Sequence record: OR805294.1
Length of the DNA: 64,000 bases
Direction: 5' to 3' (one strand)
In this document: positions 12,828-59,069 of the stretch, piece by piece
Layout: each line of letters starts with the position of its first letter
Numbering within the stretch: position 1 is the first letter of the stretch
The notes under the pieces: model-generated
The model's input: the letters and a program-made list of their open reading frames with translations, nothing else
Told to the model about the DNA's origin: nothing
Database searches by the model: none
Translations under genes and position numbers: made by a program

Positions 12828-15800
12828 ATGTCTAATTTAAATGATTTTTTTGGATCAAGTGGATCAGAAGGCGGGGGAGCCGAAGTTAAAAGACTAGACG
12901 ACTTAGTAGACGTTTCTGTAGCTAGTCCAACTAACGGTCAAACCCTTGTTTTTGACAACACAGGCTGGGTAAACAGAAAACTTAGCTACAATGATTTATC
13001 TAATCTTCCGTCTATATCAAACACATTAAGTGGATTAGATGATGTAGACACTGCCGGTACTATAGCCGGATATGTATTACAATTTAACGGAATAAAATGG
13101 GTAGGTATGCCTGCCAGTAGTTCCATTTCGTTAGACGATTTATCTAATGTTGCTATTACAGCACCCTCAATAAACCAAACACTGCTATTTAATGGATCAA
13201 CATGGTATAACGGATCTGTAGATTTTAATAATTTAATAAACACACCCGTTATTCCTACACATTTAGGTGATTTGTCAGATGTTTCTGTCAGTGCTTCTAC
13301 TCAAGAAGGAAGTGTACTAGTTTTTAGAACAGGACAATGGATTGGTTCTGTAATAAATTACAACGATTTGTCAAATACTCCTACTATACCGCAAAACGAT
13401 TCATTTACATTCTTAGGTTTATCTGATACTAACGATATACCGGAAGCAAATGGGTTTTTAAAATGGAACAATTTAAGTACAGAAATAGAATATGTTACTT
13501 CAATACCTTCGTCTGCTATAACAGGATTAGCCAATGTTGCAACAACCGGTTTATTATCCAATTTAGTAGATGTGAATGTCAGTGGTGTATCTAATGGCCA
13601 GGTTCTAACATATAATTCCTCTTCTAGCACATGGGTTCCTACTACGCCATCAACTGGCGGCGGAACAAGTGATCCTACTGCTATTTTTAGTACAGACGGT
13701 AATACGTATATTAATACTGAAGAATTAGTAGACGAGCTAGTTTTAAAAACCGGACCTGGATCCGGAAATGTAAATGTCGTTCTCGGTGGCAGCGGCAAGA
13801 TTGTCGTCGAAGGTCAATCTCCGGAAATAATATCGGAAACTAGTTTAAAATTAACAGGTAGCAATTTATATTTAAATGAACTATCTTGGCCTACGACTGA
13901 CGGAACGAGCGGTCAAGTTTTAGCTACAGACGGAAATGGAAATCTCTCATTTATAACAGTATCGTCCGGTGGAACTACTATACTCATAAACTGGCGCGGC
14001 GAATGGGAAGAAACTAGTTATAATATAAACGACGCTGTAAGTTATGCTGGTTCTAGTTATATATGTGTTGCTGAAGTAGCTGGCGGCGATATTTCTGTTC
14101 CGCCTAGCAATACAAACTTAAATTGGAATATACTAGCACTAAAAGGTGAAGACGGATCATTCTTTACTTATACGGGAACTTATGATTCTAATACTGAATA
14201 TGTAGATAAAGATGTAGTTTATTATAACGGTTCATCTTATGTAGTGTTAGACGGGCAAGGACCTATTACAGGAATCACCCCTACTGACCAATCTAAATGG
14301 GGTATATTAGCGTTAGCTGGTTCTGGAGGAACAGGCAGTGGTTTTACTTACAAAAATGAATATAATAATTCGGAAACTTATCAAGACCAAGACGTTGTTA
14401 GTTATGGAGGATCTTCATACATTGTTAGTCCTGGCAACGGTCCTGTTACTGGTATTTTGCCTACCGATTCTTCTATTTGGGGTATTATTGCACTCAAGGG
14501 TCAAGACGGGTCTGGAACAGGTAACCAGTCGCTTGAAGATTTAACTGATGTATCTAGTGCCACTCCTACTTCGGGGAATGTGTTAGTAGCTAACGGGTCA
14601 TCATGGTCTTCTTCTAAGTTATCATATAGTCAACTCCAAGGTCTACCCACTTTATCTGTAGTTGCTACTTCTGGTAGTTATAATGACTTATTAGATAAAC
14701 CTTCTAATACAGGAACATTTATTGGATTATCAGATACTGATACTCCTTCCCTACCGAATGGATTTTTAAAATGGAATGCACAAGGAACATCTATATCTTA
14801 TGTACAATCAATACCTTCAGAATCTATTTCTGGTTTGGCTACTGTTGCTACTACCGGTGATTATAGCGATTTAACTAATACACCTAACATACCAGTTATT
14901 CTAGACGACTTGACCGATGTGAATTTAGTTACGCCTCCTGTAACAGGACAAGCTTTAGTATACAACGGTACGTATTGGTTGGCAGGCAATGCCGGAAGCG
15001 GTTCGAGCACACTAGCATCATTAACTGACGTTAACTTAACTACTCCTACCAACAATCAAGTATTATCGTATGACAATACACAAAATTTGTGGATTAATAC
15101 ACAAATAGATTATGATGATATTTTAAATACACCTAGTATACCCGTAAATAATAGCTTTAGCTTGGTTGGGTTGAACGACACGGATAATTCTGCTATTCCG
15201 AACGCATTCTTAAAATGGAACTCAACTGGGAATTCAGTAGAATATGTTCAGTCTATTTCTGCTAGTAGTATAACAGGATTATCTACTGTTGCTACAACTG
15301 GAGACTACAACGACTTAACTAATTTACCTTCTATTCCAGAAAATATAGGTGATTTAAATGACGTAGATACATCTACTGCACCTACTGATGGTCAAATACT
15401 CATATATAGTGCAGCACTAGGAAAGTGGATTCCTGGAGATCAAAGCGGTACTAGTCCAGTTCCAGGCGGCTTCCCCGGCGAATGGTTAAAAATCAATTAT
15501 ACCCCCGGCAATTTAATAGGTACAATTGAGTGTTCGCCTAACATATCATACACTATAGTAGATAATGTTGCAAATAATAATCTTACTTTAGATTTAGTAT
15601 TTGCAAATAGACCATACCCGCCTGCTGGATGGATGTGGTATGGTTACTTAGTAACACAAGGCAGATATGTATTAAAAATGCAAGATACTACTAGTCATCC
15701 GCATACGTTAGAGCTTACAACTACTGAAAATCCGTTTGGGACAGGAACTGGAAAATTATCAGGATTCCAGTGCAGGGTATCAACTACTGGAGCCCAAAGT

Positions 15801-43285: not shown

Positions 43286-44401
43286 ATGGCTAAAAAAGAA
43301 AACATCGTAGAAACGTATCTTCGTCCGACGGAGTGTGCTGCAATTATCCGCGGCATGTTCAAGGCGAAGCGTCCTGTGTTCCTCTGGGGTCCGCCGGGGG
43401 TAGGCAAGTCGGATATCATCGCCCAGTTGGGTTTCGAGGCTGACCGACCGGTCATCGACATGCGTCTGATCCTCATGGATCCCACTGATATCAAGGGCAT
43501 TCCGTACTACGATCCGAAAACCAATACCATGCGCTGGGCTATTCCGTCCGATCTTCCGCAACCCGGCGAAACTACCCTGGACAACGCCATCTTGTTCCTG
43601 GACGAAATGAACTCGGCGCCGGCGAGCGTTCAGGGCGCTGCATATCAGCTTATCCTGAACCGTGCCATCGGTTCGTATAAGCTGCCCGATGGCGTCGACA
43701 TTGTCGCTGCTGGTAACCGCGATACCGACAAGGGCGTTACTTATCGTATGCCTAGTCCGTTGGCCAACCGTTTCGTTCACTTGCAGATCGAAACCAACTT
43801 CGAGGACTGGCAGCAGTGGGCGCTTAACAACACGGTACACCCGGATGTAGTCGGCTACCTCACTCAGCACAAGCAGAACCTGTTCTGCTTCGATCCCCAA
43901 GATCGTAGCAAGGCGTTTGCTACTCCGCGAGCCTGGAAGTTCGTGTCCGACATCCTCCAGCTCGCAGGAATCAACAAGGACCACCTGCTACGTGCGACTA
44001 TCGCAGGAACCGTCGGCGAAAGTCACAGCTACTCCTTCATGCAGCACATGAAGTATGCTTCGCAGCTTCCGAAGCCGGAAGATGTACTAACCGGCCGGGT
44101 AACCGATCTCAAAGTCGAAGAGATCAGTGCTCGTTACTCGCTCGTGGTCAGTATGTGCTACACTCTAAAAGAGTGGCTGGCTGACGTAGCTGACGCTGAC
44201 AAAAAGTACACTACCGAGGATTGGCACAAGTCGGTAAACTTGTTCTTCGAGTACATGATGAACAACTTTGCCCAAGAAATGGTCATCCTCGGCGCGCGTA
44301 CTGCGTTGCGCGAATACCAACTGCCGATCAACAGAAAGTTGATCCCTTGCTTCACTAAGTTCTTCCAAGAGTACGGCAAGTTTATTGTCGACTCGAACTA
44401 A
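43286..44401 (+). CDS. MoxR-like AAA+ ATPase
   Basis: VFLWGPPGVGKS (Walker A), ILFLDEMNSA (Walker B), VAAGNR, PLANRF, ATPRAW. Confidence 0.92.
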   Translation: MAKKENIVETYLRPTECAAIIRGMFKAKRPVFLWGPPGVGKSDIIAQLGFEADRPVIDMRLILMDPTDIKGIPYYDPKTNTMRWAIPSDLPQPGETTLDNAILFLDEMNSAPASVQGAAYQLILNRAIGSYKLPDGVDIVAAGNRDTDKGVTYRMPSPLANRFVHLQIETNFEDWQQWALNNTVHPDVVGYLTQHKQNLFCFDPQDRSKAFATPRAWKFVSDILQLAGINKDHLLRATIAGTVGESHSYSFMQHMKYASQLPKPEDVLTGRVTDLKVEEISARYSLVVSMCYTLKEWLADVADADKKYTTEDWHKSVNLFFEYMMNNFAQEMVILGARTALREYQLPINRKLIPCFTKFFQEYGKFIVDSN

Positions 44402-45381: not shown

Positions 45382-45735
45382 ATGATCGTCAGCGAGATTA
45401 TATATTCTATTTTCATAGCTGCATTAATAACAGTTATGACTATACTATATATAAGTCTCAGAATAATAACATGTAAGATATTAAATAAGTCATTAAAGAT
45501 TTCAGCTAATGTAATTATATATGGTACCTCTAATATAGAATATGTATATATTCCTGAAATAAAATATAAATTTCTTTCTTTTAAAATAACACATTCTGGT
45601 TTAGTTATGTTTGATAAAGAGTTTGGATTTAGGACACTAAACGATGCCATAAATGCATTAAATATGTATGTAGACACCGATATTATAAAAATAGTATATA
45701 AAAAGGTACCCACATTTTATACTTGGCACGAATAA
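45382..45735 (+). CDS. Membrane-anchored hypothetical protein (tandem paralog 3)
   Basis: ATG 45382 preferred; one N-terminal TM segment. Confidence 0.55.
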   Translation: MIVSEIIYSIFIAALITVMTILYISLRIITCKILNKSLKISANVIIYGTSNIEYVYIPEIKYKFLSFKITHSGLVMFDKEFGFRTLNDAINALNMYVDTDIIKIVYKKVPTFYTWHE

Positions 45736-47231
45736 TGGATAATTTTGATATAGAATTAAAAGAACTCATAAAAAATACAAATCCTAACGCATTAGGAAAT
45801 GTAGTAAAAAGTAAAAAAGAAATATATGAGGAATTAGTTCGTCGAACTAATTCCTTTCTTCGTGACGACGTTTCTGTAACAGAAAGGATTCATATATACT
45901 TAAATCCGGCTGATAATGTTTACTGTAAGTATGATAACAAACGGACACTAAAGCGAAATAAAGATACAAAACAAACCCAATACGGATTTTGCGGAAATAA
46001 AAGTAAATGTAAATGTCATATGGAATGGTCTTTAAAAAATCATCCAGGCATGACACAATCCGGAAAAGAAAGTATGAAAACAAAAAGGATAAAAACTTGG
46101 ATAGAAAAATACGGTGTCGATAATCCATCTAAGTCAAAAGATATTATTGCAAAACAGCAATTAAGTAAAAAACATATAAAGCCAGATCATAGAACTATAA
46201 AGGAATTGGGATATAAAAAAGTAGTAGAACGACTTTCTAACATACTCACTCCTACGTTTAGTATAGACGAGTACGAAGGGTGCTTTAGAAAAAATGTGTA
46301 TGACTGGGTATGCAATGCATGCGGAAATATAGTTATCGGACACGTAGATTATGGGTCTACTCCGAGGTGCAATGTTTGTAATCCTATAACAAAGTCTGCT
46401 GGCGAGAATGAAATATCTAACTATATAGTATCGCTAGGTTTTGATGTGATTAACAATGACCGAACTATATTATCTAACAAAGAATTAGATATAGTAATTA
46501 AAGGCACAAACATAGCAATAGAATATAATGGTTGTTATTGGCATTCTACAAAACACAGAAAAAAATCATATCATGTAGATAAATTTATAGAATGCAGAGA
46601 TAAAGGAATAAAGTTAATACAAATTTTAGATGTAGATTGGATATCAAAACAAGACATAATAAAATCAAGGTTAAAATCTATTTTAGGTTGTAGTGATAGA
46701 ATATATGCAAGGAATACAACCATAAAAGAAATAACATTTAACGAATCTTTAATTTTTTTAGAAGAAACTCACATCCAAGGTTCTTGTCAATCATCTGTAA
46801 GACTAGGTCTATACGACAATGAGAATTTGTTAGTAGCCGTAATGACATTTGGGAAATCTAGATATACAAAAGAGGAATATGAGTTACTTAGGTATGCTAG
46901 CAAAAATACTGTTGTAGGAGGAGCCAGCAAACTTCTTAGATATTTCATAAAAACCTATTCCCCTAAATCTATCATTACATATGCAGACAGGTGCTGGTCA
47001 GATGGAAATTTATATAAACAACTCGGGTTTACAAATGTAACTAAGAATGACAGAAATACAGGATATTGGTATATAAAAGACAACATAAAATATCATAGAT
47101 CTAATTTCATAAAATCTAAGATTTCTAATAAAAATAATTTACATCTAAGCGAATCGGAAATAATGGATAGTTTAGGTTATTTAAAATATTACGATTGCGG
47201 CAATTACAAATATACATTGCAGGTACGCTAG
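45735..47231 (+). CDS. Free-standing homing endonuclease, paralog of 28206..29888
   Basis: ATG 45735 is TAATG-coupled. CNAC...CNVC Zn ribbon, KYGVDNPSK motif, ELDIVIKGTNIAIEYNGCYWHS, IYARNT, TYADRCWSDGNLYKQLGF, YDCGNYKY. Confidence 0.85.
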   Translation: MDNFDIELKELIKNTNPNALGNVVKSKKEIYEELVRRTNSFLRDDVSVTERIHIYLNPADNVYCKYDNKRTLKRNKDTKQTQYGFCGNKSKCKCHMEWSLKNHPGMTQSGKESMKTKRIKTWIEKYGVDNPSKSKDIIAKQQLSKKHIKPDHRTIKELGYKKVVERLSNILTPTFSIDEYEGCFRKNVYDWVCNACGNIVIGHVDYGSTPRCNVCNPITKSAGENEISNYIVSLGFDVINNDRTILSNKELDIVIKGTNIAIEYNGCYWHSTKHRKKSYHVDKFIECRDKGIKLIQILDVDWISKQDIIKSRLKSILGCSDRIYARNTTIKEITFNESLIFLEETHIQGSCQSSVRLGLYDNENLLVAVMTFGKSRYTKEEYELLRYASKNTVVGGASKLLRYFIKTYSPKSIITYADRCWSDGNLYKQLGFTNVTKNDRNTGYWYIKDNIKYHRSNFIKSKISNKNNLHLSESEIMDSLGYLKYYDCGNYKYTLQVR

Positions 47232-47286: not shown

Positions 47287-48471
47287 ATGTCCACTAAAAC
47301 CCTAGAAGAACGCATCATCCGCGCCCGTGTTCAGTTGCTGTTGAACCATCCGTTTTTCGGGACCTTGGCGCTGCGCCTTAAACTAGTCGAGGCGAACGAC
47401 TGGTGCCCTACTGCTGGTACTGATGGACGCCATCTTTATTATAATACCAAGTTCCTCGAAGACTTGGACGATAAGGAACTTATCTTCCTCATCGGTCATG
47501 AGGTAATGCACGTCGTCTACGACCACATGGGGCGGCGCGGCAGCAGAGAGCCTAAACTGTGGAACTGTGCTGCCGACTTTGTTATCAACCTCGAATTGCA
47601 CGATATGAAGATCGGCAAGCTTATCCACCGTCCGGGTACTTGCGAGCCGTGCTTTGATGAAAAGTACCGCGGAATGTCCGCTGACCAGATCTATGAACTA
47701 ATTAAGAAAGATCCGTCACTAAAAGATAAAGATAGCTTCGACGTTCACCTCGAACCCGGCGGCGCCGGGAATGAAGACGGCGATGCTTCTGGCAAATCCG
47801 GTCCTATCCCTATGTCTGCAGATGAGCAAGCTGCTCTTCGGGACGAGATCACTGAAGCTGTTCTTCAGGCTGCTAAAGCTGCTGGTGTCGGCAACACTCC
47901 GGCAGGTGTGCGTCAGATGATCAGTGACATCACTGAACCTAAACTAGATTGGCGCGAATTGCTAAACCAGACTATTCCGTCGCACATTAAATCCGACTAT
48001 ATGTGGACTCGTCCGTCGCGGAAGAGTTGGGGAACTGGTGCGACTCTGCCGGGTCAGATTGTTGATGACAAAATCGATGTTATCCTGGCACTAGACGCCT
48101 CTGGTTCGATTAGCTCTTCTCAGCTAAGGGATTTCTTAGGGGAAGTGTTAGGAATTATGGAACAGTTTAGTGACTTTTCCATACAAGTGCTAACGTTTGA
48201 TACTAGAGTGTATGAATTCCGAAAATATACTCCCGACAATGCAGACGAAATCTATGAGTATCCCCTTAAAGGCGGCGGTGGTACCGATTTTGTGGCTGTG
48301 TTTAACTTCCTTAAAGATACGCTCACTGAACCGCCGCATCAGTTAGTATTCTTCACTGACATGGAAGTGTACGACTACGGCGATCCTAACTATTGCGATA
48401 CTGTGTTTATAAACCACGGTCGCAAAGGTGTAACTGCACCGTTTGGCATCACCATCGACTACGACGAATAA
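47287..48471 (+). CDS. Metallopeptidase-VWA protein (DUF2201-like), MoxR partner
   Basis: PTAGTDG; GHEVMH (HExxH); VILALDASGSIS (MIDAS DxSxS); GGGGTDF; VFFTD. Confidence 0.9.
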   Translation: MSTKTLEERIIRARVQLLLNHPFFGTLALRLKLVEANDWCPTAGTDGRHLYYNTKFLEDLDDKELIFLIGHEVMHVVYDHMGRRGSREPKLWNCAADFVINLELHDMKIGKLIHRPGTCEPCFDEKYRGMSADQIYELIKKDPSLKDKDSFDVHLEPGGAGNEDGDASGKSGPIPMSADEQAALRDEITEAVLQAAKAAGVGNTPAGVRQMISDITEPKLDWRELLNQTIPSHIKSDYMWTRPSRKSWGTGATLPGQIVDDKIDVILALDASGSISSSQLRDFLGEVLGIMEQFSDFSIQVLTFDTRVYEFRKYTPDNADEIYEYPLKGGGGTDFVAVFNFLKDTLTEPPHQLVFFTDMEVYDYGDPNYCDTVFINHGRKGVTAPFGITIDYDE

Positions 48472-48485
48472 TCGTAGGTTAAAAC

Positions 48486-48513
48486 AAAAAAGGGGCTTAT
48501 AAGCCCCTTTTTT
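48486..48513 (+). terminator. Rho-independent terminator
   Basis: AAAAAAGGGGC-ttataa-GCCCCTTTTTT. Confidence 0.85.
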
Positions 48514-48560
48514 GTTGACTAGTTTTAACTACTTAAAGCGCTGTAGCATAGCTGTACATA

Positions 48561-48658
48561 AGCGCTAAATTAGCGCAAATTTGCGTGTTTTTATGCGTTA
48601 CAATACATAGCTAATACTACGCATGCAAAACGCGCTATAGCGCAAATTTGCGTGTTTT
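48561..48658. repeat. Two copies of a 21-bp repeat TAGCGCAAATTTGCGTGTTTT with nested palindromes
   Basis: Copies at 48571-48591 and 48638-48658, each preceded by GCGCTA. CGCAAATTTGCG is a perfect 12-bp palindrome. Confidence 0.85.
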
Positions 48659-48752
48659 AAGCACATCTACTATGCTTTTTATTTTGCATTGTATTTAATG
48701 CACAGGGACAGTATTGTATGCTTGTTTGTGTCATATAAGACAATAAAATGTT

Positions 48753-48995
48753 ATGTTACATTATCTTCCAGTTATACTATTCGTTTATGTTATAGGAAAC
48801 ATATTATCATTGTTTTTATACAATGTAGTATCATACAGCACACTATTTCCATATAGTATGTTACACAAACAAAACCACAAGCAAACTCTGTTTCATAAAT
48901 TTATAAAAATGTGGTGGTTTTCTTACTTAAATGTTATTGTACTCAGTTGTGCTTGCATATATGTAATAGGCAAAAAATATATAAAGAGAATTTGA
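48753..48995 (+). CDS. Small membrane protein
   Basis: Two hydrophobic segments. Confidence 0.45.
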   Translation: MLHYLPVILFVYVIGNILSLFLYNVVSYSTLFPYSMLHKQNHKQTLFHKFIKMWWFSYLNVIVLSCACIYVIGKKYIKRI

Positions 48996-49050
48996 AATAT
49001 TATAAAGATTTTATTAAGATTATGATAAATTTAATATAGAACTAATTTAC

Positions 49051-49081
49051 AAAATAAAAGGGCTTAACGCCCTTTTATTTT
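49051..49081. terminator. Bidirectional terminator at the convergence of the plus and minus gene blocks
   Basis: AAAATAAAAGGGC-ttaac-GCCCTTTTATTTT. Confidence 0.85.
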
Positions 49082-49087
49082 AATCAA

Positions 49088-50574: not shown

Positions 50575-50847
50575 TTATTTGGCTTCAGTTTCAGCTTCTT
50601 GCTCTTCTTGTTTAGGTTCAATTGCTGATACAAAAGATTTAACTTTACTAAACACACCACCGACGCTGGCCATTTCTTCTGCGCGGAATGCTCCGCGTTG
50701 GCATGCAACATCAACTATGGTTAGTAAATCTTTAATGTCTTGTACACCTAGACGAGGTTCTTCGCTTGCTTGTTCAGTCATATTCTCTTGATCTACAACT
50801 TCTTTTTCTACAACTTCTTTTTCTACAGCTTTAGCTTTCTTAGCCAT
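50575..50847 (-). CDS. Hypothetical acidic protein
   Basis: IVDVACQRGAFRAEEMASVG core. Confidence 0.7.
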   Translation of the reverse strand: MAKKAKAVEKEVVEKEVVDQENMTEQASEEPRLGVQDIKDLLTIVDVACQRGAFRAEEMASVGGVFSKVKSFVSAIEPKQEEQEAETEAK

Positions 50848-51442
50848 TTAACATTTCTCCGTAATTGTGTGTCGGGCTCGATTCAATTTCTGATATACAT
50901 TTTTTATCAGTAATAATTATTAAGTTTGAATCCCATGGCAAATAAAATTTCCAATCACTATCTCTTATTAAAATAGGTAATTGTTGCCTACGAGAAACAA
51001 GTTCATAATAAGTAGGTCTATGTGGCATTTTAATGGGAATAATATTCTTGTTATCGCCTTTTTTGTTATTACAAACTTTGCATGCAGTGCATATATTAGT
51101 CCAATTTGTCTTACCACCGTATCTCTTAGGTAAAACATGATCTAGTGTTAGTTGTTTAACAGGAAACGTTCTAAAACAAAACTGACACTGATAGTTATCC
51201 CTTAAATATACGTTGTTTCTGGAAAACTTTGTTTTATGATTCCATTTAATGTATTCAGTTGACATTACAATAGATGGAACCTTCATAGTAATACTGGGAG
51301 AATTAACTTCCCAATTGTCGTAATTTTTTAAAATTTCGACCTTGCCAAGCGATACTAATTTAATACTAGTTTGCCAGTCTACAACAGATAATGGTAACAT
51401 GCATAACGGATTACCGTCTTTGTTAAGTATCAAAGTATCCAT
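50840..51442 (-). CDS. HNH endonuclease
   Basis: VYLRDNYQCQFC...LTLDHVLPKRYGG...NICTACKVCNNKKG. Confidence 0.92.
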   Translation of the reverse strand: MDTLILNKDGNPLCMLPLSVVDWQTSIKLVSLGKVEILKNYDNWEVNSPSITMKVPSIVMSTEYIKWNHKTKFSRNNVYLRDNYQCQFCFRTFPVKQLTLDHVLPKRYGGKTNWTNICTACKVCNNKKGDNKNIIPIKMPHRPTYYELVSRRQQLPILIRDSDWKFYLPWDSNLIIITDKKCISEIESSPTHNYGEMLNG

Positions 51443-55155: not shown

Positions 55156-55181
55156 ACATATACCGTAAAAATTTTTACCAT

Positions 55182-55210
55182 ACTATAAAATATGTATATT
55201 CAATAGTCAA
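55182..55210 (-). promoter_or_regulatory. sigma70 promoter (leftward)
   Basis: TTGACT-17 bp-TATAGT on the minus strand. Confidence 0.75.
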
Positions 55211-55244
55211 CTGTGTTTGGTAACAAAATGTGGTAATTAGGCAC

Positions 55245-55273
55245 TTGACATTGGTATTGTCTTTTAGTAAACT
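55245..55273 (+). promoter_or_regulatory. sigma70 promoter (rightward) pointing into the ORF-free structured region
   Basis: TTGACA-17 bp-TAAACT. Confidence 0.78.
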
Positions 55274-55279
55274 GTGCGC

Positions 55280-56028
55280 TTGCGTAAGAAATGTATATAC
55301 GATAGTGCTATATGTATATACAGACAAGTGGCTCTGTTCCGTTATTGGATATTGATAGTAGAAACTATCCCCATCGTGCTGTTATTGTAGTTCCGATAGT
55401 GTCGGGTTAACGTTTTAACAGTTATTTAAATTATGATTTTGGGTGCCACAGAGATTGTACTTACTAAAAGGACTTAGTAAGAACCGCATATAATCTCGAA
55501 ACTTGGGTAGGATGTTGGTCTAACCACGGCATAGAATATATGCCTCAACTACTACACGGAAAGGATGATGCTCTGGTTGAAACAGAGTTTCTATAAATCT
55601 TTCAGTATAGATTCCGTATGGCTGAAAGTTGAAACACCAACATCAATAGACTATAGTTTTTGTTAGTGTGGCTATAGTTTATTCCGGCATTGAAAGTATA
55701 TACAGTGATGCGAGACAGTAAGCATTAGTAGCAACTGTATATATGAGTAAGAGGATGCGTTTACAATGAGGAATTACCTATCGGTGCCCGCCTCGGGGAT
55801 TGCACTTCCCAACGTACACTAAACTTCGTACCATACCGAAACATACGTTTCTGTTATTACGATTTCCTTCCCAAACGGGGAGGAAATCTTCTCCGCCCGA
55901 ATATCATAAGATCAAAAGCATTAATAATTAATACATAAAATTCATTTAATTAGTTATTAAGTATATGAGTTGTAGTTTACGAAAACGAATATACTTAATA
56001 ACTACCAGTGAAGCTTGCTTCGCTGTTT
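55280..56028 (+). ncRNA. Candidate large, highly structured non-coding RNA (about 630-750 nt; 3' end uncertain)
   Basis: No ORF of 60 aa or more on either strand. GC is elevated relative to the flanks. At least 12 hairpins plus nested long-range helices (55431-55445/55894-55909; 55504-55510/55774-55780; 55511-55519/55636-55644). A promoter lies upstream. Confidence 0.7.
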
Positions 56029-56029
56029 A

Positions 56030-56940
56030 AAATTGCAATTTGTATTTTCAATTTTATATTTCGAAATGTGTTTTTGAAAATCAATCTATAAAATATAATT
56101 TTAAATATTATTTTTAAATGTCATTTTGTGATTTTAATTTAAAATACTATTTCATAATTTAAAATGGAAATATATTAAACAATATCATTTTGTGATTTTA
56201 ATTTAAACAATTCCATATAAAACTATTTTGTCTATTTCTTTTATAATCTTAAAGTCATTAAAAACCCTACGTTTGTAGGGTTTTTATTTGATTATATTGT
56301 ATTCGGTTCAAGACATTTAGATTATTATAATTAATAATATCTGTATGATAATTTTATTTTATAGAAATACATTTACTAATTACATTTATCAATGAATGGT
56401 TATTTTCTTTATATTTAATGCGTCTCAGGGTATATAGCAAATATGATAAATCAAGACACATAATATATTGTGTCTATATTTTTAATTTCATTAATCTACA
56501 TAATTGTTTATTAATGTATACAGTTATATACGTTATGTTGTAATAACAAACTAAATTATATAGAAAATACACATTAAATTCTGTTTTGTGTCAAATCGAC
56601 ATTACATATATCATTATGTATTGATACTTGCTGTATATATAAAAATAATTAGTTATTATGTGCTTTAGAAGAATTCCATTATAAATAGTTTTCTGTGTCA
56701 TATTCAAATGATGAAAAACATAATTCTTTCATCTATTTTTATTATATGTTATTCAAGATTTATAATATAATTTTATAATGTTTGCAATTTATGACACAAG
56801 CTATTTTAATAGAATTATACTATTCAAAGTTTTGACTTATTTTGTGTGTAAAACGACAAAAATAGGCATATATAAAAAGCACACCTGTTTCCTGTATGAA
56901 ACAAAATAGTATTTTATTAAAAATAGTGTATAGTAGTAAA
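56030..56940. other. Extremely AT-rich non-coding tract with direct repeats (origin-like)
   Basis: 23-bp direct repeat TCATTTTGTGATTTTAATTTAAA at 56121-56143 and 56185-56207. TGTGTC/GACACA boxes at 56455, 56469, 56587, 56694 and 56793. Confidence 0.45.
56260..56285. terminator. Bidirectional terminator
   Basis: AAAAACCCTAC-gttt-GTAGGGTTTTT. Confidence 0.8.
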
Positions 56941-56967
56941 AAACATCATTAATCATGCACGCAATTT

Positions 56968-57914: not shown

Positions 57915-59069
57915 ATGAGTCAGATGTACGTAACTATCACTAACGGAATGTACCGTAACCAGCAAGTAAACGGCACATTCCTTTTACTTGAAGATGTGAA
58001 AGTTACTGGGTCGGGAAAACGAGTTATTAACGTATTAGGTGCATTGCCGGAATGGTCTCAACATAAATGTAGAGTTACACTCGGTAATGACGCAACAGTA
58101 CAATATTCGAACGAACAAGGAGAGGTTTTAGATTTGCCTAATGTTATACGTCCGTTTGTGGGCGAAAATAATAATAATGTTCCTGCATCTAGTCGCGGTA
58201 CAGTGTATGAAGGCACCGCAGTAGAAATTGACTACGAAAAGCAATACCAACAACTAGAATCCGAAAACGATGCAATGAATCGTATCAAACGGACCTTTGA
58301 GATTGTAAATGAACTAACAGAAGCTGCCGCAGCAGGCGAAATCCGTTCTATGATCATCTCCGGTCCTCCCGGAATCGGAAAAAGTTTCGGTGTAGAAGAA
58401 ACACTAAACAGGTGTTTCTTGTTGGATAAAATTAAAGATAATAAAGAACCGTTTGAGATCGTAAAGGGCGCGGCAAGTGCAATTGGTGTTTACCAAAAGC
58501 TTTACGAATTTAAAGATAAAGGTAAAATCCTTATTTTCGATGATTGCGACCGCGTACTATTTGACGAAGATAGTCTAAATCTCCTTAAAGGTGCATTAGA
58601 TACTACTAAGCGTAGAACTATTTACTGGCTTAGTGAGTCCCGTGTTTTAAAAGAAAATGATATTCCACCTAAATTCGATTTCGAAGGTAGTGTAATTTTC
58701 CTTACTAACCTTAACTTCGAGGATACAAAGTCCCGAATCGGAAGGCACCTAGAAGCAATTATGTCCCGGTGTCATTATTTAGACATGGAAATTAGTAGTA
58801 CGAGAGACCAGATCCTTCGTATTAAACAAGTTGTGCGCGACGGGATGCTTAGTAAATATGAATTTAATAACGGAGAAGATGAAGAAATCCTAGAATATAT
58901 TATTGATAATCAGAATGATCTGCGAGAACTTAGCTTGCGTATGGTAATTAAAATTGCCGATCTGATTAAATTCAAAAAAGATGGTTGGCGAGAATATGCA
59001 GAGACAACTGTACTGAAACGGAATGCAAAATTCCGGCGGCTGTATAACGAAAAGTACAGTGATATTTAA
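57915..59069 (+). CDS. AAA+ ATPase of unknown function
   Basis: IISGPPGIGKS (Walker A), LIFDDCD (Walker B), IFLTN, AIMSRC (Arg finger). Confidence 0.85.
   Translation: MSQMYVTITNGMYRNQQVNGTFLLLEDVKVTGSGKRVINVLGALPEWSQHKCRVTLGNDATVQYSNEQGEVLDLPNVIRPFVGENNNNVPASSRGTVYEGTAVEIDYEKQYQQLESENDAMNRIKRTFEIVNELTEAAAAGEIRSMIISGPPGIGKSFGVEETLNRCFLLDKIKDNKEPFEIVKGAASAIGVYQKLYEFKDKGKILIFDDCDRVLFDEDSLNLLKGALDTTKRRTIYWLSESRVLKENDIPPKFDFEGSVIFLTNLNFEDTKSRIGRHLEAIMSRCHYLDMEISSTRDQILRIKQVVRDGMLSKYEFNNGEDEEILEYIIDNQNDLRELSLRMVIKIADLIKFKKDGWREYAETTVLKRNAKFRRLYNEKYSDI

Follow-up and report, generated by a model that had tools for sequence, protein, structure and literature searches.

Copy A, a locus in a 64,000-nt window of sequence record OR805294.1 from the Pseudomonas jumbo phage Ettore (Wroclawvirus, PA5oct-like), is a structured non-coding RNA of about 620-630 nt whose helices are kept by compensatory substitutions and which contains no conserved reading frame. 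It is one of three plus-strand paralogs in each Wroclawvirus genome checked, and every paralog has its own sigma70-type promoter. The three copies, their promoters, their invariant blocks and a secondary structure shared among them and backed by covariation are directly supported by our data. The original prediction had described a new jumbo-phage lncRNA, which is only half right because copy A itself was published in 2020, while the three-copy family with a conserved fold appears to be unreported.

The region 55156-56967 was claimed to be free of ORFs, and indeed no ORF of at least 60 aa was found on either strand, the largest being 50 aa (minus strand) and 43 aa. The claim of a GC-rich segment was likewise correct, with 39% GC at 55275-55915 versus 24% upstream and 19% downstream. 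The copy A locus interrupts no gene. The features that define its transcription unit and 3' flank are the following (window coordinates).

55245-55273, plus strand: sigma70-type promoter of copy A (-35 at 55245-55250, 17-nt spacer, -10 at 55268-55273)
55280-55910, plus strand: copy A RNA, the counterpart of ncRNA004 in PA5oct, with a start deduced from the promoter; the RNA-seq annotation maps to 55292-55910
55916-56967, no strand: non-coding spacer (20% GC) that separates copy A from the plus-strand genes after it
55951-56034, plus strand: two hairpins past the annotated 3' end (inverted repeat)
56259-56286, no strand: canonical intrinsic terminator, bidirectional, within the AT-rich spacer, found by a terminator scan and with weak terminator-like matches in Rfam

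The predicted TTGACA-17-TAAACT promoter proved to be the top-scoring site of our scan, with 10 of 12 matches. Both hexamers are invariant in 10 genomes, and the two SNPs in the spacer occur in Cassandra only. Copies B and C carry TTGACA-17-TATAAT in the equivalent position, and all 21 sequences have kept both hexamers intact. Host-type -35/-10 promoters have been reported for PA5oct (10.1101/406421).

Copy A is transcribed in the sister phage PA5oct. The orthologous locus lies on the same strand with 99.1% identity (over 851 and 636 nt), and the ncRNA feature 246116..246734 (619 nt) maps onto copy A at 55292-55910. This feature, ncRNA004, was annotated from RNA-seq as the "putative lncRNA" EST35_0353 (Lood et al. 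2020, PMC7318152). The paper gives coordinates and read shares only, with no promoter, structure or paralogs (PMC7318152). The annotated 5' end is at most 12 nt from the promoter-predicted start and the 3' end falls at 55910; the prediction of a plus-strand structured ncRNA with its own sigma70-type promoter is thus matched by an RNA-seq transcript with nearly the same ends. The remaining PA5oct ncRNAs, 001-003, show no sequence relation to copy A.

ncRNA004 is a low-abundance transcript (PMC7318152), with a read density 0.1-0.4 times the genome average, and this makes it a poor fit to a stoichiometric sponge. Its share of phage reads falls from 0.08 to 0.03 and 0.02% (PMC7318152, Table 1) while the phage share of all reads climbs from 21 to 69 and 92%, so that by our arithmetic its share of total RNA holds steady at ~0.02%, as expected of a stable species. 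Neither a T-run nor a terminator is found at the annotated 3' end. Beyond it, an AU-stem hairpin with a 23-nt loop (55951-56004) is followed by a second hairpin (56005-56025) and a T/A-rich tail, and this may be where the primary transcript truly ends. Downstream of copy C the identical 23-nt loop sits on another stem, and copy B is followed by an equivalent hairpin pair. Each copy has its own hairpins or terminators behind it.

We then considered whether the locus encodes protein. Only one ORF in copy A starts with ATG and has a purine-rich stretch upstream, and 4 of 10 genomes have a stop codon inside it; in the remaining small ORFs, substitutions alter the amino acid. A small-ORF cluster or a pseudogene was rejected for copy A on these grounds, the ORFs being broken or their changes non-synonymous. 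Automated annotation calls small CDS on all three loci. The dozens of tiny "hypothetical protein" CDS on these loci of Wroclawvirus genomes are probably spurious.

Copies B and C lie at positions 170,806-171,460 and 234,690-235,625 of the Ettore genome. Exactly three copies were detected in the complete 287,740-bp genome by blastn, nhmmer and the covariance model R1 of the 5' module described below alike. The copies are spaced 53-64 kb apart, and B and C are matched at no less than 98.7% identity in all 11 Wroclawvirus records. Only copy A is annotated as RNA. In PA5oct, where the three loci lie at about 246,104-246,860, 12,832-13,600 and 75,799-76,900, copy B is unannotated and three tiny CDS are placed on copy C; as judged from sequence, the putative RNA genes B and C are absent from this reference annotation. 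No neighbouring protein gene is duplicated alongside any of the three copies. The paralogs are mostly diverged apart from shared invariant blocks of 24 and 26 nt. Gene conversion, rather than a shared partner, could keep these two largest blocks identical.

Plain MAFFT misaligned the paralogs, so an anchored alignment and covariance-model realignment were used for the comparative analysis. The resulting architecture of copy A, from 5' to 3', is as follows.

55292-55322, plus strand: leader hairpin with a 9-bp stem, specific to copy A; the leaders of B and C differ
55328-55449, plus strand: conserved 5' module, a four-way junction (comparative model R1), with helices P1 (55328-32/55445-49), h1 (55338-49), h2 (55354-69), P2 (55370-77/55433-43, with a 3-nt bulge) and P3 plus hairpin (55378-55422)
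55356-55379, plus strand: invariant block 1, 24 nt, identical in 21 of 21 sequences
55421-55446, plus strand: invariant block 3, 26 nt, identical in 21 of 21 sequences
55451-55497, plus strand: nested hairpin with an AAGGA-containing loop and inner stem 55460-67/55474-81
55563-55685, plus strand: conserved central junction domain (model R2), with P4a (55563-65/55683-85), P4b (55566-70/55641-45), P4c (55574-77/55636-39), P4d (55587-91/55631-35) and hairpin h7 (55646-57/55671-82)
55686-55788, plus strand: long-range helix P5 (55686-92/55782-88) and, within it, a variable domain with the hairpin 55696-55744
55789-55910, plus strand: variable 3' domain, unalignable between paralogs, which holds the 12-bp hairpin 55861-55888

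The original prediction named covariation among homologs as a check, and when the check was run on the paralogs a conserved fold with compensatory pairs emerged, with controls far lower. In the 5' module, 33 pairs are paired in 98.9% of cells and 8 show compensatory change; the covariation score is 0.265 versus 0.110 for shuffled alignments (none of 500 reached it), and slid controls give 0-2 compensatory pairs. Model R2 was built from copy A alone and then used to align the central domain; it recovers copy B at 57 bits and copy C at 42.6 bits. The 29 pairs of this domain are paired in 98.2% of cells, 16 of them with compensatory change, and the covariation score is 0.512 versus 0.158 (0 of 500 shuffles), with 2-4 compensatory pairs in the slid controls. 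Together, the two modules hold 24 base pairs with compensatory change, a count to be read with the fact that the statistics draw on three independent lineages of one genus and hence on few events. One case, a C-G to U-A double change, falls within a single lineage. In the anchored alignment, P5 pairs at 7 of 7 positions in A, 6 of 7 in B and 7 of 7 in C, with 3 compensatory pairs, and encloses a domain of 99 nt (A), 48 nt (B) or 197 nt (C). The conserved structure spans more than 450 nt. Invariant nucleotides cluster in the junctions between covarying helices, several of which have no unpaired linker.

All stems quoted in the original prediction exist at the positions and with the complementarity given, including the 12-bp hairpin at 55861-55888, the 9-bp helix 55511/55636 and the 15-bp helix 55431-45/55894-909. 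The comparison separates the local from the long-range elements. The local hairpins were largely right: GATAGT/ACTATC and AGACTATAGT/GCTATAGTTT recur in the paralogs with compensatory changes. For the nested hairpin at 55451-55497 the prediction stands in part, as individual folds and anchors place hairpins with the same loop motif at the same relative position in B and C, but the stems there are unrelated. The long-range helices fared worse. The 15-bp helix proposed to close the core clashes with the conserved P1 and P2 and has no equivalent in B or C; its duplex energy is -16.6 kcal/mol in A versus -8.1 and -9.9 kcal/mol for B and C. The 9-bp helix is unconserved and competes with the conserved, covarying P4, and the 55504/55774 helix is also unconserved, with no comparative support. 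The description "almost fully base-paired" was overstated, since 61-64% of bases are paired in the MFE and alifold models.

The folding energy of copy A is -185.3 kcal/mol, giving z = -4.67 against dinucleotide shuffles (z = -3.07 for the minus strand). The proposed comparison with shuffles therefore comes out in favour of folding, but copy A does not stand out as extreme within this genome: among 99 plus-strand windows of 640 nt (mean z -2.0, sd 1.7) the copy A window ranked 3rd-4th, and its 320-nt halves ranked 21st and 38th among 199. Because this phage folds well throughout, thermodynamics alone is suggestive rather than decisive, and the case for an RNA is made by conservation, the substitution pattern and covariation between paralogs.

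Across 10 genomes copy A has 18 SNPs, no indels and a pi of 0.0095, compared with 0.012-0.025 in the flanking genes and 0.0365 in the adjoining spacer (55916-56967), which with 36 gap columns is the most variable segment of the neighbourhood. Substitutions between A and G outnumber those between C and T by 11:4 in copy A versus ~3:4 in the flanks. Of the 11 A/G sites, 6-10 face an invariant U, depending on the fold model (p = 4e-4 to 0.085). This pattern, together with the G-U pairs, agrees with the predicted RNA-level selection on the plus strand.

We searched for known families and for homologs, and copy A fell into no Rfam family even at E<=10. Membership in ROOL, GOLLD or OLE, as had been suggested, gained no Rfam covariance-model match: none of the three reached its gathering score in the whole window, E<=10 for the copy A RNA or E<=1 for copies B and C. 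The reported lack of tmRNA, RNase P and intron hallmarks holds, with no Rfam match (group I and II introns included) and nothing from ARAGORN. The 6S RNA model did not match copy A, and the RsmY, RsmZ and CsrB models gave no match. ARAGORN found no tRNA in the 64-kb window; the tRNA cluster of Ettore (138,743-142,942) lies 21 kb from copy A and 28 kb from copy B. A GTATATAC motif in copy A was checked and was not significant.

No homolog outside Wroclawvirus was found by blastn, nhmmer or pattern scans. In blastn against 50,697 phage records (E<=5), only chance matches of 29-31 nt lay outside the genus. Pattern scans of IMG/VR with a hairpin and two invariant 18-mers gave 5 chance matches, all rejected by R1, and scans of JGI metagenomes and GTDB gave 164 chance matches, among which nhmmer found no homolog. 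The invariant blocks were searched in IMG/VR only, the JGI and GTDB scans using patterns that predate their discovery. Synteny through neighbouring proteins gave no homolog either, and the 297-aa neighbour is an ORFan among 5.8 billion proteins.

We tentatively favour, at somewhat short of even chances, a family of stand-alone, trans-acting folded RNAs (~630 nt in copy A) that would bind one shared partner. The host sigma70 RNA polymerase would transcribe each compactly folded RNA gene from its own promoter, and the folded product would work in trans. Together, the invariant 5' four-way junction and the tight central junction may offer a common partner, which could be a phage or host protein or a nucleic acid, a single binding or active surface shared by the copies; each paralog would owe its own properties to its divergent peripheral domains. 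A compact fold would also let a weakly transcribed RNA persist throughout infection.

It is unlikely, though still the best placed of the alternatives, that each copy is a cis-acting element of a longer transcript, whose 5' module, produced immediately after a strong early promoter, acts on the transcribing polymerase or on the downstream message and, through processive antitermination or a leader role, controls the plus-strand gene block after it. Each copy directly follows a sigma70-type promoter and faces plus-strand genes with terminator-like hairpins in between, the phage relies on host polymerase, and HK022 put provides a precedent of paralogous RNA elements after early promoters. However, the RNA-seq reveals a discrete 619-nt species ending at 55910 rather than a gene-joined leader, the length of conserved structure far exceeds the needs of known antitermination RNAs, and the genes are set off from the RNA by a canonical terminator and by variable spacer of up to 1 kb.

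Less probable still is a replication-origin transcript, in which the RNA or its 3' end forms an R-loop or primer at the AT-rich DNA downstream and the three copies mark three origins. The terminator-less 3' end of copy A does adjoin ~1 kb of 20% GC DNA with direct repeats, the copies are widely dispersed, and the phage has a T4-like set of replication and recombination genes. Yet the long AT-rich spacer occurs at copy A only (234 nt 3' of B, 445 nt 3' of C) and is the least conserved DNA in the area, the replication genes are ~100 kb off, and the conserved 5' and central structures would be left unexplained. An origin assignment by GC skew was rejected, as the skew merely tracks gene orientation.

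Similarly improbable is a catalytic or self-processing RNA, or an RNA-only multimer like ROOL, GOLLD and OLE, with the invariant junctions as active site or interface. The clustering of invariant nucleotides in junctions, several of them linker-free, and the 3' end without a terminator are compatible with it; the palindromic motifs that might also speak for it are specific to copy A, and the RNA resembles no known ribozyme or ornate RNA family. We consider it very doubtful that the RNA is a decoy for a host factor that binds GGA-type loops or RBS-like sequences, such as RsmA/RsmN or the 30S subunit. The AAGGA-loop hairpin is retained in all three copies despite differing stems, and AGGATG occurs 3 times in copy A versus 0.16 expected (a post-hoc count), but GGA is not enriched (10 observed versus 8.3 expected), in the comparative model the conserved AAAGGATG block is taken up in P4a/P4b, one exposed site per 630 nt at low abundance makes a poor sponge, and RsmY, RsmZ and CsrB have no Rfam match here. 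That no functional RNA exists, and that the loci are weakly transcribed repeats of a DNA element (a protein-binding site, recombination hot spot or mobile remnant) or clusters of small-protein genes, is highly improbable: the low abundance, the nearby homing-endonuclease genes and the automated small CDS would fit, but compensatory changes preserve RNA helices, among them G-U pairs, which in DNA or on the opposite strand would be mispaired, substitutions are strand-asymmetric, the small ORFs are broken or freely changing, and the promoters are conserved.

The RNA family matters for several reasons. It is rare for a large structured RNA to have no known job, and several such RNAs, GOLLD and ROOL among them, are tied to phages. 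Three natural variants on an invariant core form a ready-made comparative series for probing the structure, for cryo-EM and for identifying partners, in phages of a laboratory host that are culturable, well studied and candidates for therapy; strand-specific infection RNA-seq of PA5oct is public (Lood et al. 2020; also in the PhageExpressionAtlas). The annotation is corrected as well, in that the tiny CDS on the three loci are doubtful and the putative RNA genes B and C are missing from PA5oct. There is a slim chance that the family is a class of its own, made up of large phage RNAs that fold autonomously and have an invariant junction core that is catalytic, self-assembling or the RNA subunit of a phage-specific ribonucleoprotein; if so, a new RNA class would contribute to host takeover by Wroclawviruses. 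One search for phages able to grow on deep-dormant P. aeruginosa recovered the Wroclawvirus group alone (PMC10761892).

Among known systems, the family shares with phi29 pRNA its character of a phage-encoded structured RNA from an early promoter. pRNA is a single-copy RNA of ~170 nt that works within a protein machine; it has no similarity to the present RNA, which has three copies. With RsmY, RsmZ and CsrB the family shares several paralogs per genome and a conserved hairpin loop with a GGA-type motif, but it is a much larger RNA with a largely rigid fold, low abundance and no Rfam match, in which GGA is not enriched, one loop site is conserved and the second conserved block is paired. ColE1 RNA II (~550 nt, structured) and the T4 oriF and oriG transcripts are likewise promoter-driven RNAs that end at easily melted DNA, whereas here a long AT-rich tract adjoins copy A only. 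The HK022 putL and putR elements are also paralogous structured RNAs, encoded just 3' of early promoters by a phage that relies on the polymerase of its host. The put RNAs are ~70 nt long and act only in cis, and in contrast to them the present structure is conserved over several hundred nt and a discrete RNA accumulates, although a put-like antitermination RNA could also be expected to lie, as these copies do, between a promoter and terminators. Finally, GOLLD, ROOL and OLE are large ornate bacterial and phage RNAs (PMC5737381, PMC12286853). Unlike them, the present family leaves the covariance models unmatched, is confined to one phage genus and comprises three diverged paralogs; ROOL and GOLLD often sit beside tRNA genes in phages and prophages, and copy A is 21 kb from the tRNA cluster. 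It resembles them in its length within 600-900 nt, in a multi-domain fold with covarying helices and in its phage setting.

The window comes from Pseudomonas phage Ettore (OR805294.1; genus Wroclawvirus, family Arenbergviridae), a PA5oct/Paride-like jumbo phage isolated on P. aeruginosa PAO1 (PMC10761892); window coordinates are record coordinates minus 62,000. The original prediction placed here a large folded non-coding RNA behind its own promoter. Zero ORFs of at least 60 aa were found within 55156-56967, the TTGACA-17-TAAACT promoter was located at 55245-55273, every listed stem was present with the complementarity claimed for it, and the RNA was GC-richer than its flanks (39% versus 24% and 19%). 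The transcript itself is already known. The orthologous PA5oct locus is 99.1% identical and carries an ncRNA feature (246116..246734, window 55292-55910) labelled 'putative lncRNA; ncRNA004; annotation based on RNA-Seq data'. It is one of four transcribed ORF-less regions listed by Lood et al. 2020 (PMC7318152), and therefore the core claim, a new jumbo-phage lncRNA, was already in print. The ncRNA004 share of phage reads falls from 0.08% at 5 min to 0.03% at 15 min and 0.02% at 25 min (PMC7318152), and phage reads make up 21, 69, and 92% of the total in PA5oct infection (10.1101/406421). Multiplying these shares puts the RNA near 0.02% of total RNA throughout; this near-constant value, our own arithmetic on published read shares, fits a stable but scarce RNA. 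Reports of its structure, promoter, paralogs, or function were not found in the literature on ncRNA004. The sequence of PA5oct ncRNA003 is unrelated; that feature spans 103065..103668 (604 nt) in GenBank versus 103368 printed in Table 1 of Lood et al. 2020 (PMC7318152), overlaps CDS EST35_0169, and is GC-richer in its first ~250 nt only.

After a similarity search showed three places per genome, the whole Ettore genome was examined for further copies with blastn and nhmmer. Both revealed two additional plus-strand copies, B and C (L180 and L182 are fetched pieces of the genome):

Window 55280-55910, plus strand, copy A (start predicted from the promoter)
Ettore 170,806-171,460 (L180:44806-45460), plus strand, copy B (blastn, nhmmer)
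Ettore 234,690-235,625 (L182:8690-9625), plus strand, copy C (blastn, nhmmer)

A separate TTGACA-17-TATAAT promoter precedes each of copies B and C, its hexamers preserved in all genomes examined, and 11 of 11 Wroclawvirus records match both copies at an identity of at least 98.7%. RNA annotation is lacking for both in every record seen, and automated pipelines place tiny 'hypothetical protein' CDS on them. In PA5oct, copy B falls in an unannotated 910-bp gap within the terminal repeat, and copy C is overlain by three tiny CDS. Identity between copies is just 43-49% over crudely aligned columns, yet one 24-nt block and one 26-nt block are invariant across all 21 sequences (ten genomes for A, six for B, five for C). 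The duplicated unit consists of promoter, RNA, and two trailing hairpins; no co-duplicated protein gene was found among the neighbours. The hairpins at 55951-56004 and L182:9843-9897, downstream of A and C, share an identical 23-nt loop on differing AU-rich stems, and a second, GC-containing hairpin comes next in all three copies. The transcript may in fact stop at these trailing hairpins, or they may form an element of their own.

Plain MAFFT misaligned the paralogs. We anchored the alignment on shared blocks, applied RNAalifold, and tested two conserved modules separately, each with a covariance model (R1, R2):

Window 55328-55449, plus strand, 5' module, comparative structure (R1)
Window 55563-55685, plus strand, central domain, comparative structure (R2)

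In the 5' module, helix P1 closes a four-way junction bearing hairpins h1 and h2 and a stacked P2-P3 arm. Its 33 pairs have 98.9% of cells paired, in MAFFT and model-realigned alignments alike, with both-sided change at 7-8 pairs; a C-G to U-A double change occurs only in copy B of phage phi30-3. The covariation score was 0.172-0.265 versus 0.082-0.110 for shuffled alignments (0 of 500 shuffles reached the observed value), and partner-slid controls gave 34-52% pairing with 0-2 compensatory pairs. R1 scored the three copies at 146-158 bits, and no other site in the 287,740-bp genome exceeded 21.8 bits. R2, built with copy A sequences only, recovered B (57 bits, E ~1e-11) and C (42.6 bits, E ~4e-8) end to end. 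In the R2 alignment, the central domain has 29 pairs, 98.2% paired, with compensatory change in 16 (slid controls, 2-4) and a covariation score of 0.512 versus 0.158 shuffled, which 0 of 500 shuffles reached. The P4a/P4b/h7 junction has no unpaired linkers, and P5 (55686-92/55782-88) begins immediately 3' of P4a, pairing at 7/7 positions in A, 6/7 in B, and 7/7 in C, with three compensatory pairs in the anchored alignment. An AAGGA-containing hairpin loop is common to the copies on unrelated stems. Copy A loses 10 of 184 kcal/mol when constrained to the comparative fold.

Covariation confirmed h2, the nested hairpin, and h7 among the predicted stems; several other local hairpins are A-specific. 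The predicted 15-bp closing helix needs 55431-45, which conserved P2 and P1 also require; as a duplex it reaches -16.6 kcal/mol in A, whereas B and C attain only -8.1 and -9.9 kcal/mol, respectively. The 9-bp 55511/55636 helix competes with covarying P4b/P4c, and the GTGC/GCAC hairpin overlaps the P5 3' strand. The clashing helices may be A-specific alternative pairings or chance. Segments 55511-55519 and 55566-55577 can both pair with 55636-55645, in a mutually exclusive manner; the former, which nearly repeats the copy C version of block IV, is an A-specific second partner for the P4 3' strand. This is possibly a switch and possibly chance.

The proposed folding check gave a mixed result. 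The plus strand folds at -185.3 kcal/mol (z = -4.67; minus strand, -3.07), but this is not extreme genome-wide. Among 99 plus-strand windows of 640 nt (mean z -2.0, sd 1.7) the RNA window comes 3rd-4th, and the 320-nt halves of that window are placed 21st and 38th of 199, so predicted folding energy alone is suggestive and no proof. In a 6.9-kb alignment of ten Wroclawvirus genomes, copy A shows pi 0.0095, 18 SNPs, and zero indels; adjoining genes show pi 0.012-0.025, and the spacer directly downstream (55916-56967), the most variable DNA of the neighbourhood, pi 0.0365 with 36 gap columns. The substitutions that fall within the RNA show strand asymmetry (A/G 11 versus C/T 4; flanks 33:47, 34:41, and 30:42). 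The A/G sites lie opposite an invariant U at 10 of 11 in the alifold model and 6-9 of 11 in single-sequence models (p 4e-4 to 0.085). Of the 9-10 polymorphic sites that are paired in minus-strand folds, only 4-6 stay paired.

Several other elements were observed. The 1,052-bp non-coding spacer (20% GC, very negative folding z-score) carries a bidirectional terminator at 56259-56286 and, at ~56120 and ~56184, the two units of an exact 23-nt direct repeat. A GC island at 43755-44394 (52% versus genome 34%), with the lowest folding z-score among the 99 windows, lies inside ORF 43286-44401, encoding a 371-aa AAA-type ATPase (Pfam AAA_5). The strongly folding 616-nt ORF-less gap at 48472-49087, between convergent genes, has two strong terminator-like hairpins at its edges and a 19-nt motif present twice. 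Three HNH/homing-endonuclease genes lie at most 10 kb upstream of the RNA (45723-47231, 47287-48471, 50840-51442; PHROGs 3339, 1314, 16726), and others are annotated elsewhere in the genome. The 384-aa product of 57915-59069, 'thioredoxin' in PA5oct, resembles an AAA/STAND-type NTPase (PHROG 1250; Pfam AAA_16 below cut-off), with ~1,300 distantly related proteins in T4-like phages; its label is probably a propagated annotation error. The 297-aa gene adjoining copy A is an ORFan.

Three promoter-driven plus-strand RNA genes thus share a conserved covarying fold without coding signal, and the locus is very probably a structured RNA gene family. The copy A transcript is low in abundance and appears stable. 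We tentatively favour, at somewhat below an even chance, a folded RNA that would act in trans, its invariant junction core binding one shared partner and its periphery being specific to each paralog. A cis-acting antitermination or leader element is unlikely. A replication-origin or primer transcript is less likely still: the long AT-rich tract adjoins copy A only, and GC skew just tracks gene orientation. We rate a ribozyme or self-assembling RNA just as low. A decoy for a factor binding GGA-type motifs is improbable, as GGA is not enriched and the second conserved block is base-paired. Least credible is a non-functional repeat or small ORFs; the ATG ORF 55565-55666, rejected as a gene, is interrupted by a stop codon in 4 of 10 genomes, and in the remaining small ORFs on copy A the substitutions alter the amino acid.

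The three-copy family, promoters, invariant blocks, and covariation-backed architecture appear unreported so far. With the searches available, homologs were not found outside Wroclawvirus in phage genomes or in IMG/VR, JGI metagenomes, and GTDB genomes, the JGI and GTDB pattern scans being a weak test with patterns other than the invariant blocks. The family offers a tractable system, with a laboratory host and existing RNA-seq; the counterweight is its restriction to a single genus. Against Rfam 15, the window had no match at gathering score, nor did the RNA itself with E relaxed to 10; tRNA and tmRNA were not found in the window. Within covariance-model reach, introns, RNase P, 6S, and Rsm RNAs were ruled out, as were ROOL, GOLLD, and OLE, the classes in which membership had been suggested. 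The family matches no described RNA family and belongs with the large structured phage and bacterial RNAs of unknown function.
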